DNA of 64,000 nucleotides from Macrostomum hystrix (GCA_950097015.1 CATNEN010000001.1:21700001-21764000); one strand, 5' to 3'. Numbered from the stretch's first letter, positions 30,401-48,733 are shown. Numbers and translations: made by a program. The notes: generated by a model not told the origin, from the letters alone.

Positions 30401-33400
30401 ATGTGGGATCTGGGATGTGGGATCTGGGATGTGGGATCTGGGATGTGGGATCTGGGATGTGGGATCTGGGATGTGGGATCTGGGATGTGGGATCTGGGAT
30501 GTGGGATCTGGGATGTGGGATCTGGGATGTGGGATCTGGGATGTGGGATCTGGGATGTGGGATCTGGGATGTGGGATCTGGGATGTGGGATCTGGGATGT
30601 GGGATCTGGGATGTGGGATCTGGGATGTGGGATCTGGGATGTGGGATCTGGGATGTGGGATCTGGGATGTGGGATCTGGGATGTGGGATCTGGGATGTGG
30701 GATCTGGGATGTGGGATCTGGGATGTGGGATCTGGGATGTGGGATCTGGGATGTGGGATCTGGGATGTGGGATCTGGGATGTGGGATCTGGGATGTGGGA
30801 TCTGGGATGTGGGATCTGGGATGCGGGATCATTTATGGAGGGTTTAAGATTTCGGTTATTTGAGCAAAGATTTCTTACTAGAGATAGTTGAGTCTGTGGT
30901 ATTTCCTAGGATTTTGATACAGATGAAAAGCAAATTTGACGAATCTCATTGCTAGACTGAGATAAAGAAAGTTTTACTACAACTGAGAGTCAAATAATCT
31001 TTAGCCTACAATTCCAGACCAAAGGTAGCACCTCACGCGAGAGATTGAATCACTCTGAGCTTCTTGACATGAATTTGGGGCGGTTCGGGGACGAGAGCAA
31101 ACATACGAAGGGGTGATTTGGAATGAAAAAAAGCTCCACATATGTAAAGACGCGACAGGGGAAGATACGCAGAAGACAAAAAAGGGTACACAGATTGCTG
31201 CCGAAACACGTCAGCTCCCACACTGCGGTGGGTTGACTTTGCACTGAGAACAGGCGTCCGGGATGTGCCGATCTGCATGCTAGCAGTTGCTGGGGTAGTG
31301 GGCGGATGAGAAGGAGGAGAGGGGAATTTATCCCCGCCTGCTCAGCCAAGTGGGAAAAATTCGGCGAGAGACACAGAATAGGATAATAGGAAGCGCCGAG
31401 TAGGAATTATCCCAGCCCCCATTCTCGTCGAGGAGGAGAAAGAGTGGGGAAACTTGGGATTTGTAGACTAGAGGCCAATGGGGAGAAATCCCATCAGTGT
31501 GTAAATCTGACACTGGGAAGTCTGCTGGATTAATGGCCGCAGCGGGAGCACCCACAGGATGGAGAGATTTCCAATGAAATATTACTGACATAAATGTTAC
31601 ATCGAGATCCGGGCCTCACCTGCTGAACAGGTCGATGTTGAAAAAGACATACTCGCCGTTGATGAAGCCGAGCTCCTGGGCTTTGATCATGATCTCGCGG
31701 ACGGTGTCCGGGTCAGCGCAGAGGACCACGACTGGATGAGGTGGAAAGATTTCAGGGTTTGGCGGTTGAAGAGCTTGTGAAAACTTTGAAATCAATGCTT
31801 TCAAATGAGCATTAAATACCACGTTTATTATATCATGCATTAAGTGTACATTTAAATGTACATTGAGTCTTCATACGAGTGTACATTGAATGTAGATCTA
31901 AATGTACACTAATTCTACATATAAATTTACATCGAGCGTACATTCCCATGTGCAGACATTACGCCACGTAATGTAGATGTTTCGTCAATTATCGATTATA
32001 ATGAGCCAACATTTTTATTGTACATGGGGGAATCTTGTTTACATTTTTATCTATTAAAATACTATTAATACACTCTAACGGACATGGAGTGCGAGTTTAA
32101 TGTACACTGACTGTACATTATCCTGTGGATTAGGTGTACATTCCAGTATACACTTAATTTTGTCAGAATAATGTCATAAAAAAATAAATATGCAAGTCAT
32201 TTTTACATAACTAAATATAAAATAATTATGCGGATGCATTATAACAAGTAATAATAGCAAGTGTCTTGCTAAAGGACTTAAATTATTTAAGTGGAGCCGG
32301 GAATCGAACCTCCGACCTTCACGTCGTCAGTTCGACGCTCTAACCACTAGGCTGCAGTCTTCTATAAATGTACTTTAAACAGCACTTGAAAGATATAAAT
32401 TATGTTTTAAATAAAATATTCCCATAAATGCTGAGTGCATTTCAGACAAACGCACAGGCATGTGAATTGATGTGGGGGGGGGGGAATTGCAAACACGCGA
32501 AAGCCTCATAGAAACAGCGCCTTGGCTATTAAATTACCATCTGCCATTTGCTATGGACGAGTTAGCGAACTCAAAGAACACACAGTACCACTGGAGCAGT
32601 GCATGTGGTCACCAACTGTTATAATACTGTTCGAAATGATTAATACCCAACTGCTGCAGTTTGAATAACAACTGCACTCGAGTGTCTGCTCACACTCCGG
32701 CTTACTCATAATTATATAACATGGAAGCCAGGCTTTGCCCTCTAAGATTTAGTTTAACGCTTGGTCACTGCTTGGATACGAGCTTCAAAGCTGTCAATAA
32801 ATTTATGACTGGACCGGTTGGGCAGAAGAAACTCTAAGCTGGTTTATGCCTGTTTTATTATTATCATCGTGTGTAGTTTGCTAACACTAGCAATGCCTTC
32901 CTGCCACCACAGGCTCTCATGTTCTCAAAGCAGAAAGCGGGAAAGAAGTGAAATCTAGGAGTGAAGCTCTGGGCGGTTTGTGCGGAATGTTTCTAGTTTA
33001 TTGCTTCGTCCAGTCACTAAGTCTCTCTGTTTCACTCTCACCCCAGTGCCTCTACTCTCCATCTACCTCTCACCCTAATATCTCTATCTACCCTTCACTC
33101 TAATATCTCTATCTACCTCTCACCCTAATATCTCTATCTACCTCTCACCCTAATCTCTCCATCTACCTCTCACCCTAATATCTCTATCTACCTCTCACCC
33201 TAATCTATCCATCTCCCTCTCACCCTAATCTCTCTATCTCCCTCTCACCCTAATCTCTCTATCTACCTCTCACTCTAATCTCTCTATCTACCTCTCACCC
33301 TAATCTCTCTATCTACCTCTCACCCTAATCTCTCCATCTACCTCTCGCCCTAATCTATCTACCTCTCACCCTAATATCTCTATCTACCTCTCACCCTAAT

Positions 33401-48400: not shown

Positions 48401-48733
48401 GCCAATGAAGCCATCAACCCTGCCAGTATAATAATACTCCATGGCGGGCACCGCTGCTAGGTTTGAACAAGTGGAAGCCTCGAAGCTGATGTTGATGTGA
48501 AAGTTGTCGGCCAAGCCTTGGCTATTTAGGCTGTCCAGCAGCAGCGGCTGACTTGGCATAATATATCGCATGTCAAACTGATAGTTGGACTCATTTGGTA
48601 GCAGGCAGAGCAGGCGATATTGCCGTTTGACAGTTGATGAAGACAACGAAGCTGACACAGGTTGAGAGCTTATTAGCATAATGAGTAGAATGATGACAAT
48701 TTCATGGTCGATTGCCGCAGTTAACAATTCCAT
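18377..48733 (-). CDS. Receptor (membrane) guanylyl cyclase, natriuretic peptide receptor type. Isoform A (~1164 aa) = A1+A2+C1..C9; isoform B (~1158 aa) = B1+B2+C1..C9
   Basis: Signal peptide, ANF-receptor ligand-binding domain, TM helix, kinase-homology domain ([17 protein letters not shown]), hinge coiled coil and cyclase domain ([29 protein letters not shown]). All junctions are GT-AG and phase-consistent. Confidence 0.93.
18550..18840. repeat. 21-bp minisatellite (TTGATTTGAACAAACTGTCCA)
   Basis: Array in last cyclase intron. Confidence 0.95.
18878..19068 (-). CDS. Guanylyl cyclase constant exon C8 (catalytic)
   Basis: [31 protein letters not shown]...RGEVEMK. Confidence 0.96.
19491..19734 (-). 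CDS. Guanylyl cyclase constant exon C7 (catalytic)
   Basis: [13 protein letters not shown]...[17 protein letters not shown]...RIGIHSG. Confidence 0.96.
19790..20045 (+). mobile_element. SINE family 1 copy in cyclase intron
   Basis: Shares aacgcg.ttgcctctcgc...ctcgattcc...tttatttggggcgcag...ctccaaggcacagtgag with the 45787 copy. Confidence 0.72.
20083..20543 (-). CDS. Guanylyl cyclase constant exon C6 (kinase-homology end, hinge, cyclase start)
   Basis: [12 protein letters not shown]...[18 protein letters not shown]...[12 protein letters not shown]. Confidence 0.96.
20595..21433. repeat. 13-bp minisatellite (GAGTGATCTAAGA)
   Basis: Fills nearly the whole C5-C6 intron. Confidence 0.96.
21453..21611 (-). 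CDS. Guanylyl cyclase constant exon C5
   Basis: [10 protein letters not shown]...[14 protein letters not shown]. Confidence 0.95.
22755..23215. repeat. 36-bp minisatellite (GGGGTGGTGGGTGTGCTAAGCGAGGCATGGAACATT)
   Basis: Tandem array. Confidence 0.92.
24310..25035. repeat. 21-bp minisatellite (AGAAGTAGATCGAGATGTGAG)
   Basis: Tandem array. Confidence 0.96.
25236..25404 (-). CDS. Guanylyl cyclase constant exon C4 (kinase-homology domain)
   Basis: [35 protein letters not shown]; absent from the ORF track in this frame, read manually. Confidence 0.93.
25497..27165. repeat. 23-bp minisatellite (GTGAGTCAATCTGGTCATTTCAT)
   Basis: ~1.7-kb tandem array. Confidence 0.96.
27630..28228. repeat. 23-bp minisatellite (AGATCTAGGGTGAGATTCGAGAG)
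   Basis: Array abutting the C3 donor. Confidence 0.95.
28244..29013 (-). CDS. Guanylyl cyclase constant exon C3 (TM helix, juxtamembrane region, start of kinase-homology domain)
   Basis: [29 protein letters not shown]...WRIPW...[12 protein letters not shown]...DWMFKFSL. Confidence 0.95.
29080..29540. repeat. 14-bp minisatellite (GGGATCTAGGATGT)
   Basis: Array in the C2-C3 intron. Confidence 0.95.
29608..30170 (-). CDS. Guanylyl cyclase constant exon C2 (rest of ectodomain)
   Basis: QPWRRD...[12 protein letters not shown]...[24 protein letters not shown]...[10 protein letters not shown]. Confidence 0.95.
30234..30830. repeat. Near-perfect 14-bp minisatellite (GGGATCTGGGATGT)
   Basis: Homogeneous array. 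Confidence 0.97.
31620..31731 (-). CDS. Guanylyl cyclase constant exon C1
   Basis: atccag|TC GTG GTC ([21 protein letters not shown]...YVFFNIDLF); phase 1 in, phase 2 out. Confidence 0.92.
32260..32357 (-). mobile_element. tRNA-derived SINE, family 2 (head)
   Basis: Minus strand reads gcctagtggttagagcgtcgaac...ggttcgattccc (A and B boxes), then tcctttagcaagacac; a second copy lies near 16.6 kb. Confidence 0.65.
33045..35095. repeat. 25-bp minisatellite (CTCTCACCCTAATCTCTCTATCTAC)
   Basis: ~2-kb tandem array. Confidence 0.96.
35511..36093. repeat. (GATA)n microsatellite
   Basis: Visible. Confidence 0.98.
36497..37750. repeat. 15-bp minisatellite (TCACACTCTCCTTC-type)
   Basis: Visible; explains the spurious 523-aa ORF. 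Confidence 0.96.
39222..39495. repeat. ~21-22-bp minisatellite (AAACCCGGAAAATTCCYGAATC)
   Basis: Array just downstream of the B2 donor. Confidence 0.9.
39583..40005 (-). CDS. Guanylyl cyclase variable cassette B, exon B2
   Basis: atgcag|GT CCC TAC TGC ([14 protein letters not shown]...PILTAGG...[10 protein letters not shown]...YGW); donor CGGA|gtaaga, phase 1. Confidence 0.88.
40110..40670. repeat. 17-bp minisatellite (GAAGGGATGGTAGATTT)
   Basis: Array near the B2 acceptor. Confidence 0.95.
41340..42030. repeat. 17-bp minisatellite (GAAGGGATGGTAGATTT), same family as 40110-40670
   Basis: Array near the B1 donor. Confidence 0.95.
42110..42401 (-). CDS. Guanylyl cyclase variable cassette B, exon B1 (signal peptide + start of ligand-binding domain)
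   Basis: [17 protein letters not shown]..., [24 protein letters not shown]; donor TTGG|gtgagt, phase 1. Confidence 0.88.
43180..44360. repeat. 24-bp minisatellite (AGTCTCACCCTATCCATCTCTATT)
   Basis: Visible. Confidence 0.96.
45180..45535 (-). CDS. Guanylyl cyclase variable cassette A, exon A2
   Basis: ctgcag|C GCC ATC TGG ([11 protein letters not shown]...FVRLSF...NNWHRF); donor TCGG|gtaaat, phase 1. Confidence 0.85.
45600..45786. repeat. 12-bp repeat (GTCACTCTGATT), interrupted by a SINE and resuming near 46115
   Basis: Visible. Confidence 0.9.
45787..46075 (+). mobile_element. tRNA-derived SINE, family 1 (best preserved copy)
   Basis: A box TGGCAGAGCGG (45797-45807) and B box GTTCGATTCC (45842-45851); body shared with copies near 19790, 61388 and 9000. 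Confidence 0.75.
46682..47105. repeat. (GATA)n microsatellite
   Basis: Visible. Confidence 0.98.
47430..48325. repeat. 16-18-bp minisatellite (CTAGATCAATCTCACACC)
   Basis: Array abutting the A1 donor. Confidence 0.95.
48357..48733 (-). CDS. Guanylyl cyclase variable cassette A, exon A1 (signal peptide + start of ligand-binding domain)
   Basis: Hydrophobic [22 protein letters not shown]...[13 protein letters not shown]; donor TCAAA|gtgagt, phase 2. Confidence 0.85.

Follow-up and report, generated by a model that had tools for sequence, protein, structure and literature searches.

A 64,000-nucleotide (nt) stretch of the Macrostomum hystrix genome, here called the window and used for the numbering of all positions, carries on its minus strand what its sequence identifies as most of a receptor guanylyl cyclase gene of the natriuretic peptide receptor (NPR) type, i.e. 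similar to the vertebrate receptor GC-A. We consider it likely that this one gene follows a variable-constant plan, in which three N-terminal cassettes (D, A, and B) are spliced alternatively to a single constant exon (C1). Cassettes A and B, proposed in an earlier note on this DNA, lie within the window, and we find D just beyond its end. The evidence comes from the architecture of the locus, its paralogs elsewhere in the assembly, transcript-derived models of the related flatworm Macrostomum lignano, and isoform sets from other phyla.

Each of the cassettes A and B consists of two exons on the minus strand. Exon A1 (48357–48733) opens with an ATG and a hydrophobic, signal-peptide-like start, encodes the first part of the ANF-receptor domain, and ends in a phase-2 donor (AA|GTGAGT); A2 (45180–45535) runs from its acceptor (cag|C) to a phase-1 donor (G|GTAAAT). 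B1 (42110–42401) likewise provides an ATG and a signal-peptide-like start, followed by a phase-1 donor (G|GTGAGT), and B2 (39583–40005), part of what is the canonical (R-type) cassette, lies between a phase-1 acceptor (cag|GT) and a phase-1 donor (A|GTAAGA). All of these splice sites are canonical. Cassette A spans 733 nt (377 + 356 nt, i.e. 244 codons + 1 nt) and cassette B 715 nt (292 + 423 nt, i.e. 238 codons + 1 nt). On translation, none of the four exons contains a stop in the frame given by the earlier note, and the peptide motifs quoted there are present, as are the start codon and signal-peptide-like start claimed for each cassette. The terminal phase-1 donors of A and B fit the sole downstream acceptor, at 31731, and the predicted junctions carry the residues claimed for them, i.e. 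..[11 protein letters not shown] for A–C1 and ..EVR-I-VVLCADP for B–C1. When A2 is read past its donor, the frame closes after 2 codons (GK*).

The assignment of these exons to the ANF-receptor domain (Pfam ANF_receptor, PF01094), which the earlier note had made for both cassettes, is borne out. Single-exon matches are weak for A1 (E 0.0017), B1 (E 0.042), and B2 (E 0.0054), and A2 alone has no ANF_receptor match in Pfam; the A-type M. lignano protein P0153 is above the threshold (3.1e-08; 33.5 bits against a cutoff of 25.4). A cassette profile built from several phyla (234 positions) matches A2 up to position 233 (E 3.4e-20) and B2 up to position 231 (E 1e-27). A and B thus cover the same part of the domain, yet they share just 15–25% identity. 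Their internal introns lie about 15 residues apart and differ in phase, which indicates that A and B did not arise recently by duplication of a single two-exon unit. Searches with A/B-type cassettes, D-type cassettes, and the multi-phylum profile found no further cassette inside the window, and neither the gaps that separate the cassettes nor the B2–C1 interval yielded another conserved coding piece. The sequence between the cassettes holds just minisatellite translations and a dispersed short repeat, so that A has no constant region of its own.

Downstream of the cassettes, a single set of nine constant exons extends from 31731 to 18383, with one copy each of C1 and C2 in the window. These exons, all on the minus strand, were placed with the M. 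lignano ortholog P0152 and then checked one by one with Pfam. C1 ([14 protein letters not shown]...FNIDLFS; 31620–31731) carries the only shared acceptor (ccag|TC at 31731) and covers ANF_receptor positions 180–213 (2e-05); its counterparts at the three paralogous loci are 92–97% identical to it. C2 (29585–30172, limits of the tblastn match) encodes the second half of the ANF-receptor ectodomain (5e-22, profile positions 213–352) and is 87% identical to P0152. The next exon (28235–29014, again match limits; 79% identity) contains the juxtamembrane region, the transmembrane (TM) helix, and the start of the kinase-homology domain (PK_Tyr_Ser-Thr, 5e-10); its hydrophobic 24-residue stretch, [24 protein letters not shown], is the single TM helix. 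Three exons between 20080 and 25407 (matches 25407–25198, 21612–21454, and 20550–20080; 84–94% identity) encode the kinase-homology domain, the dimerization linker, and the start of the cyclase, with Pfam kinase, HNOBA, and Guanylate_cyc pieces. The last three, between 18383 and 19737 (matches 19737–19489, 19072–18878, and 18472–18383; 83–95% identity), encode the guanylyl cyclase catalytic domain and the C-terminal tail, with Guanylate_cyc matches of 1e-25 and 7.5e-23. PK_Tyr_Ser-Thr is matched by two window exons. Both tblastn and Pfam therefore bear out the statement of the earlier note that the window contains only one copy of the remaining ectodomain, TM, kinase-like, and cyclase exons. 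In the M. lignano ortholog, the kinase domain scores 1.8e-39 and ANF_receptor (P0152) 2.6e-46, and the ortholog matches the solved human NPR1 (GC-A) from end to end (E 1.8e-271). In this alignment, the cassette boundary falls at about residue 209 of the 435-residue NPR-A ectodomain.

The earlier note had counted two cassettes. Both are real, and the count itself has to be raised to at least three, because a third cassette, D, lies just outside the window: 1.4 kb separates it from the window end, and A1 follows 16.7 kb downstream of it. D consists of one open exon on the minus strand (G000:C1:21766158-21765390, i.e. 66158–65390 in window numbering) with an ATG, a signal-peptide-like start, 256 codons + 1 base, and a phase-1 donor (G|GTGAGT). 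Alone it has no Pfam match, and it is 65% identical to the D cassette at the N-terminus of M. lignano PAA64474.1. All three cassettes, D, A, and B, therefore end in a phase-1 GT donor that is compatible with the C1 acceptor.

We searched the whole assembly exon by exon and found paralogous loci on contigs C8, C38, and C12. The order A1-A2-B1-B2-C1-C2 is repeated on contigs C8 and C38, and D-type exons, located by the coordinates of their matches, lie upstream of A on both of these as well, which gives a D-A-B-constant plan at three loci. The locus on contig C12 has a different upstream cassette, X, followed by B1-B2-C1-C2; X has at least two exons (G000:C12:3490016-3492280). Every paralogous locus has one C1, and genome-wide, A/B-type cassettes occur at the four loci only. 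Identity between loci is 42–62% for cassette exons, 55–73% for C2, and 89–97% for C1. Specifically, the A1 paralogs on contigs C8 and C38 are 52–62% identical and those of A2 52–54%; the B1 paralogs on contigs C8, C12, and C38 are 46–57% identical, and B2 is conserved at four loci. The positions and phases of donors and acceptors are constant across loci, and every cassette copy retains its ATG and a leucine-rich start.

These paralogs also bear on whether the cassettes are in use. The proportion of nonsynonymous differences (pN) is 0.28–0.34 among A paralogs and 0.26–0.41 among B paralogs, and that of synonymous differences (pS) is 0.56–0.82, i.e. saturated. Third-position differences exceed first- and second-position differences in the paralogs of both A and B, and no copy contains a stop. 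Saturated pS together with open frames and low pN indicates that A and B are translated and under purifying selection at every locus, whereas an unused relic at such divergence would be expected to be unrecognizable and filled with stops. That all four exons have open counterparts at other loci, arranged in the same way, likewise speaks against a chance arrangement. Two findings that the earlier note had named as fatal to its proposal are thus not seen: pN lies far below pS in both cassettes, rather than the ratio of nonsynonymous to synonymous change (dN/dS) being near 1, and the exon order recurs at three independent loci on different contigs, which disposes of a misassembly that collapsed two genes. 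The variable-constant plan is older than the four paralogous loci, and older than the split from M. lignano.

The closest public proteins all come from M. lignano (65–97% identity); we collected them with an A2/B2 profile search against 1.84 billion representative proteins and with a search using the constant ectodomain part of P0152. Identity to M. lignano is 65% for A1 and 83% for A2 (both P0153), 66% for B1, 75% for B2 (P0152), and 65% for D. The three cassettes are therefore equally conserved in this comparison, and less so than the constant exons (79–97%). In P0152, the B2 equivalent is followed directly by C1. Among the M. lignano proteins are pairs that carry different cassettes on a virtually identical constant part: 908 of 911 constant residues are identical between PAA64474.1 and A0A1I8HCY1, 896 of 896 between PAA73242.1 and A0A1I8JDN4, 926 of 929 between PAA72669.1 and A0A1I8GAT2, and 224 of 224 in a further pair with different cassettes. 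The first 257–349 residues of the D-type GenBank proteins (Mlig_3_7 annotation) are quite unlike those of the B-type models, and the D–C1 junction in the M. lignano models reads ...[13 protein letters not shown]. In PAA62240.1, cassette X is joined directly to C1 as ...SKS-F-VVLCADP. An older model, A0A1I8JKT3, joins X into the middle of B1 and is probably a misprediction.

The GenBank BOX15_ annotation of M. lignano was built only from RNA, i.e. with StringTie and TACO on RNA-seq data, a de novo transcriptome, and TransDecoder open reading frames (PMC5730564). As such, the D–C1 and X–C1 joins, which skip A1, A2, B1, and B2, are transcript-derived in that species. These joins show that distal donors are spliced to the C1 acceptor and that cassettes are passed over in their entirety; for D-type messenger RNAs (mRNAs), A2 and B2 are skipped completely at three loci. 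The same pipeline kept just those isoforms that reached at least 0.75 of the major one (PMC5730564), and the lack of A- and B-type forms in the BOX15_ set therefore says little. In public M. lignano records, cassette A appears as a stand-alone 'ANF_receptor domain-containing protein', which is probably an annotation artifact that hides the cassette.

A cassette switch at the same place is found in other phyla. We drew isoform sets from matches to the constant ectodomain part of P0152; the RefSeq entries among them are automatic isoform predictions. Within a species, RefSeq isoforms named 'atrial natriuretic peptide receptor 1-like' share an exactly common C-terminal portion of 829–893 residues, and their first 223–267 residues are completely different, with the switch at x|VV[LI]CAS. 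Species with this switch include Mercenaria (4 cassettes), Mytilus edulis (3 cassettes), Argopecten, Haliotis, Mya, Saccostrea, Ostrea, Biomphalaria, and the nemertean Lineus. The cassettes end in one of two ways. R-type ends (...AS..AR-I) include that of flatworm B (...REEVR-I/L), and G-type ends (...[VI]G..[YF]S-V) include those of flatworm A (EKIGTDYS-V), D (RIGNKFS-V), and X. The end of A closely matches the ends of G-type cassettes that are connected to the constant part in these other species, e.g. KEKIGNDYSV and DKVGIDYSV, and this analogy is the best indirect support for a presumed splicing of A to C1.

In a tree of 42 cassettes, the nonflatworm R-type sequences (molluscs, annelid, brachiopod, nemertean, and horseshoe crab) form a clade with support of 100/96, and bivalve cassettes group with those of gastropods or a cephalopod in several G-type subgroups (support 96–98); support for the R/G split is moderate (70/77). 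The tree places flatworm A with a Lineus cassette and D with two bivalve cassettes; these placements involve very long branches and are not relied on. The cassette plan is at least as old as the molluscs and probably as old as the spiralians. It may extend further: two NPR1-like isoforms of the horseshoe crab Tachypleus (P0236 and P0237) differ in their first 263–273 residues and then coincide, although not to the very C-terminus.

Under the plan that we favor, transcription of each mRNA would begin at one cassette, in the simplest case at a promoter belonging to that cassette, whose last donor would be spliced to C1, so that any cassettes lying between the chosen one and C1 would be removed with the intron. 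The splicing machinery would have to bypass the acceptors of A2 and B2. For A and B, the internal splice (A1–A2 or B1–B2) might take place first and use up the internal acceptors, although this order is a guess. The products would be identical from the second half of the ectodomain onward, with a common TM helix, kinase-homology domain, and cyclase, and would differ in about the first 210 mature residues of the ligand-binding domain (NPR-A residues 1 to ~209). We take the NPR-A equivalents of these residues to make up the greater part of the membrane-distal lobe, some of the proximal lobe, and much of the hormone-contacting and dimer surface. The outcome would be a set of receptors with different ligand-binding surfaces and the same cyclic GMP (cGMP) output. 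Within this scheme, the joining of A and B to C1 in M. hystrix is predicted from their donors and phases, the choice of cassette is presumed to be driven by promoters, and the cassettes may differ in ligand specificity.

The earlier proposal that one locus makes several receptors accordingly stands as far as the single constant module, the several cassettes, their selection, their conservation at three loci, and the D–C1 joins of M. lignano are concerned; the use of A and B in M. hystrix is the part that we infer. Several observations weigh against the plan. A2 and B2 hold internal acceptors, and that of B2 has phase 1, like the donors of A2 and D, which makes in-frame A1-A2-B2-C or D-B2-C products possible. 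The RNA-derived GenBank set of M. lignano holds D-type and X-type forms only, and the B–C1 join occurs in three older UniProt models of unverified basis that start at an internal Met and lack a signal peptide. No A–C1 protein or model from any Macrostomum occurs among the public proteins searched, and two UniProt models, A0A1I8HBR0 and A0A1I8HXZ1 (P0004/P0153; 249 and 271 aa), contain a correct A1–A2 splice and then continue past the A2 donor into intron sequence. A difference in ligand specificity, in turn, is suggested only by the 15–25% identity between cassettes.

These observations lend some weight to other explanations. Cassette A could be a separate small gene for a secreted half ANF-receptor protein of ~246 residues, acting as a decoy or binding protein, with only B and D feeding the cyclase. 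The two read-through models, the closure of the window frame 2 codons past the A2 donor, and the missing A–C1 model would all fit this view, but the read-through tails are not conserved (GK* here, ~23 codons on contig C38, ~190 on contig C8, and at least 34 in M. lignano), whereas the donor (G|GTRAR) and its phase are kept in all A copies. Moreover, A ends at the cassette position where B ends too, in the middle of the bilobed fold (Pfam profile position ~180 of 353), where half of a periplasmic-binding-protein fold is, on general grounds, unlikely to be stable, and molluscs have G-type cassettes with this end motif that do connect to the constant part. We regard a separate gene for A as improbable. 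The idea that A or B is a nonfunctional leftover of a partial duplication, or that the layout is an artifact of an assembly that collapsed two genes, draws on the minisatellite-filled introns, which are hard to assemble; it is very hard to reconcile with saturated pS, open frames, and far lower pN in all copies, with the same order at three independent loci on different contigs, and with the conservation of both cassettes in M. lignano. This idea is already close to refuted, and we give it hardly any weight.

It is also conceivable that all cassettes are transcribed but that the choice is not simply one of three, because transcripts from D or A may include B2, as the phase 1 common to the B2 acceptor and the donors of A2 and D would allow, or because spliced-leader trans-splicing of a long precursor makes the selection. 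Trans-splicing is common in M. lignano, where it affects 38.8% of genes, and multi-gene precursors make up ~7% of the assembled transcripts (PMC5730564). Yet the RNA-derived D-type mRNAs of that species pass over A2 and B2 entirely at three loci, and inclusion of B2 would duplicate ~140 residues of the fold. A conserved upstream motif was sought before the A1 and B1 start codons and none was found across the paralogs, nor is there a conserved acceptor-like signal at these places, as trans-splicing would lead one to expect. Departures of this kind seem to us about as unlikely as a separate gene for A, and alternative splicing of D, A, and B to C1 is the reading that we retain.

The surroundings of the gene are rich in repeats. 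From 18551 to 64000, nearly every intron contains a minisatellite array, each with a different unit (periods of 13–42 nt, up to 76 copies); examples are found at 33055–34950, 25498–27113, and 43190–44358. These arrays create many long, meaningless open reading frames as well as odd Pfam matches, such as one to the phage domain Gp5_trimer_C. A dispersed repeat of ~300 bp, similar in look to a short interspersed element (SINE) or a miniature inverted-repeat transposable element (MITE), is present at 45782–46076, 19697–20040, and 61357–61724, and also in introns of the loci on contigs C8, C12, and C38. Downstream of the cyclase gene, the minus strand carries a gene for a WD40-repeat protein (7177–10239; Pfam WD40 3.7e-14), STRAP-like by eye. 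Between the two genes, an open reading frame on the plus strand (10673–11626) encodes a retroviral-type aspartyl protease (Asp_protease_2, 2.9e-08) and is probably the remnant of a retroelement.

To our knowledge, ligands are known for a minority of the invertebrate NPR-like cyclases, and each gene for such a cyclase is usually taken to stand for a single receptor. If the plan proposed here is true, receptor counts for flatworms, molluscs, and other spiralians are too low, expression data and knockdowns at the gene level blend several receptors, and screens that match ligands to receptors need each cassette tested separately. The locus would also be a natural experiment in which one half of a periplasmic-binding-protein fold is swapped against a fixed partner half, showing which half tolerates replacement. 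There is practical value for annotation as well, since public annotations miss or break the cassettes, with A a stray entry in M. lignano. A broader reading, to which we give even chances, is that the spiralian NPR-like gene is an ancient multi-receptor locus that makes at least three receptors, distinct in the N-terminal half of one ligand-binding fold, with the R-type and several G-type classes kept from flatworms to molluscs and nemerteans, deployed cell by cell and possibly forming mixed dimers. In Macrostomum, such a locus would have been quadrupled, giving at least 11 ectodomain variants from four genes.

Among known systems, the vertebrate NPR-A/GC-A (NPR1) has the same parts in the same order, i.e. 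an ANF-receptor ectodomain, one TM helix, a kinase-homology domain, a dimerization helix, and a cyclase. Unlike the flatworm locus, vertebrate NPR1 has, as far as we know, one ectodomain per gene. The nearest relatives of the window gene, M. lignano PAA64474.1 (D-type) and A0A1I8HCY1 (B-type), are orthologs that show two N-termini on one constant part; they differ from our case in coming from another species, in standing as separate, unlinked entries, and in that A is present there just as a truncated model. The spiralian RefSeq NPR1-like sets belong to the same family and share the junction (x|VV[LI]CA..), the cassette length (about 225–270 residues), and the two classes of end motif. These sets are automatic predictions; in the flatworm, a separate row of cassettes is present at each of four paralogous loci.

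The earlier note knew of no description of this layout for receptor guanylyl cyclases, and the novelty that this implied is overstated. Our literature searches found no paper describing a cassette layout in receptor guanylyl cyclases or the RefSeq isoforms concerned, but the isoforms themselves show the same switch, so that the layout is real yet not unique, and is present unremarked in the RefSeq isoforms of many spiralians. In addition, isoforms c and d of Caenorhabditis elegans gcy-28, which share their 3′ end, are driven by separate promoters and begin at different start codons, with isoform c broadly expressed and isoform d confined to a few neurons, including AIA (PMC9249223, PMC3842693). 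Compared by its published description, gcy-28 is thus alike in being one NPR-like receptor guanylyl cyclase gene with alternative 5′ isoforms; unlike here, a cassette logic is not discussed for it in these two papers.

The clustered protocadherins and UGT1A offer the closest formal parallel. In these systems, as in the flatworm locus, a tandem series of alternative 5′ units, all provided with a start codon and a donor of their own, faces one common acceptor on the first constant exon, and the variable part serves recognition while the constant part serves a common function. Of the features expected of such a plan, several tandem 5′ units with an ATG and a donor, found in the paralogs too, and one constant set with a single shared acceptor are present. 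The units are not all single exons devoid of a 3′ acceptor, however: in flatworm A and B, an intron divides the cassette into two exons, the second of which (A2 or B2) carries an acceptor, and D alone is a single exon. Just three units were found at the flatworm locus, and two to four are seen elsewhere. Finally, and again unlike the protocadherins and UGT1A, the flatworm cut falls inside a single bilobed fold, so that each cassette must fit the same second half.

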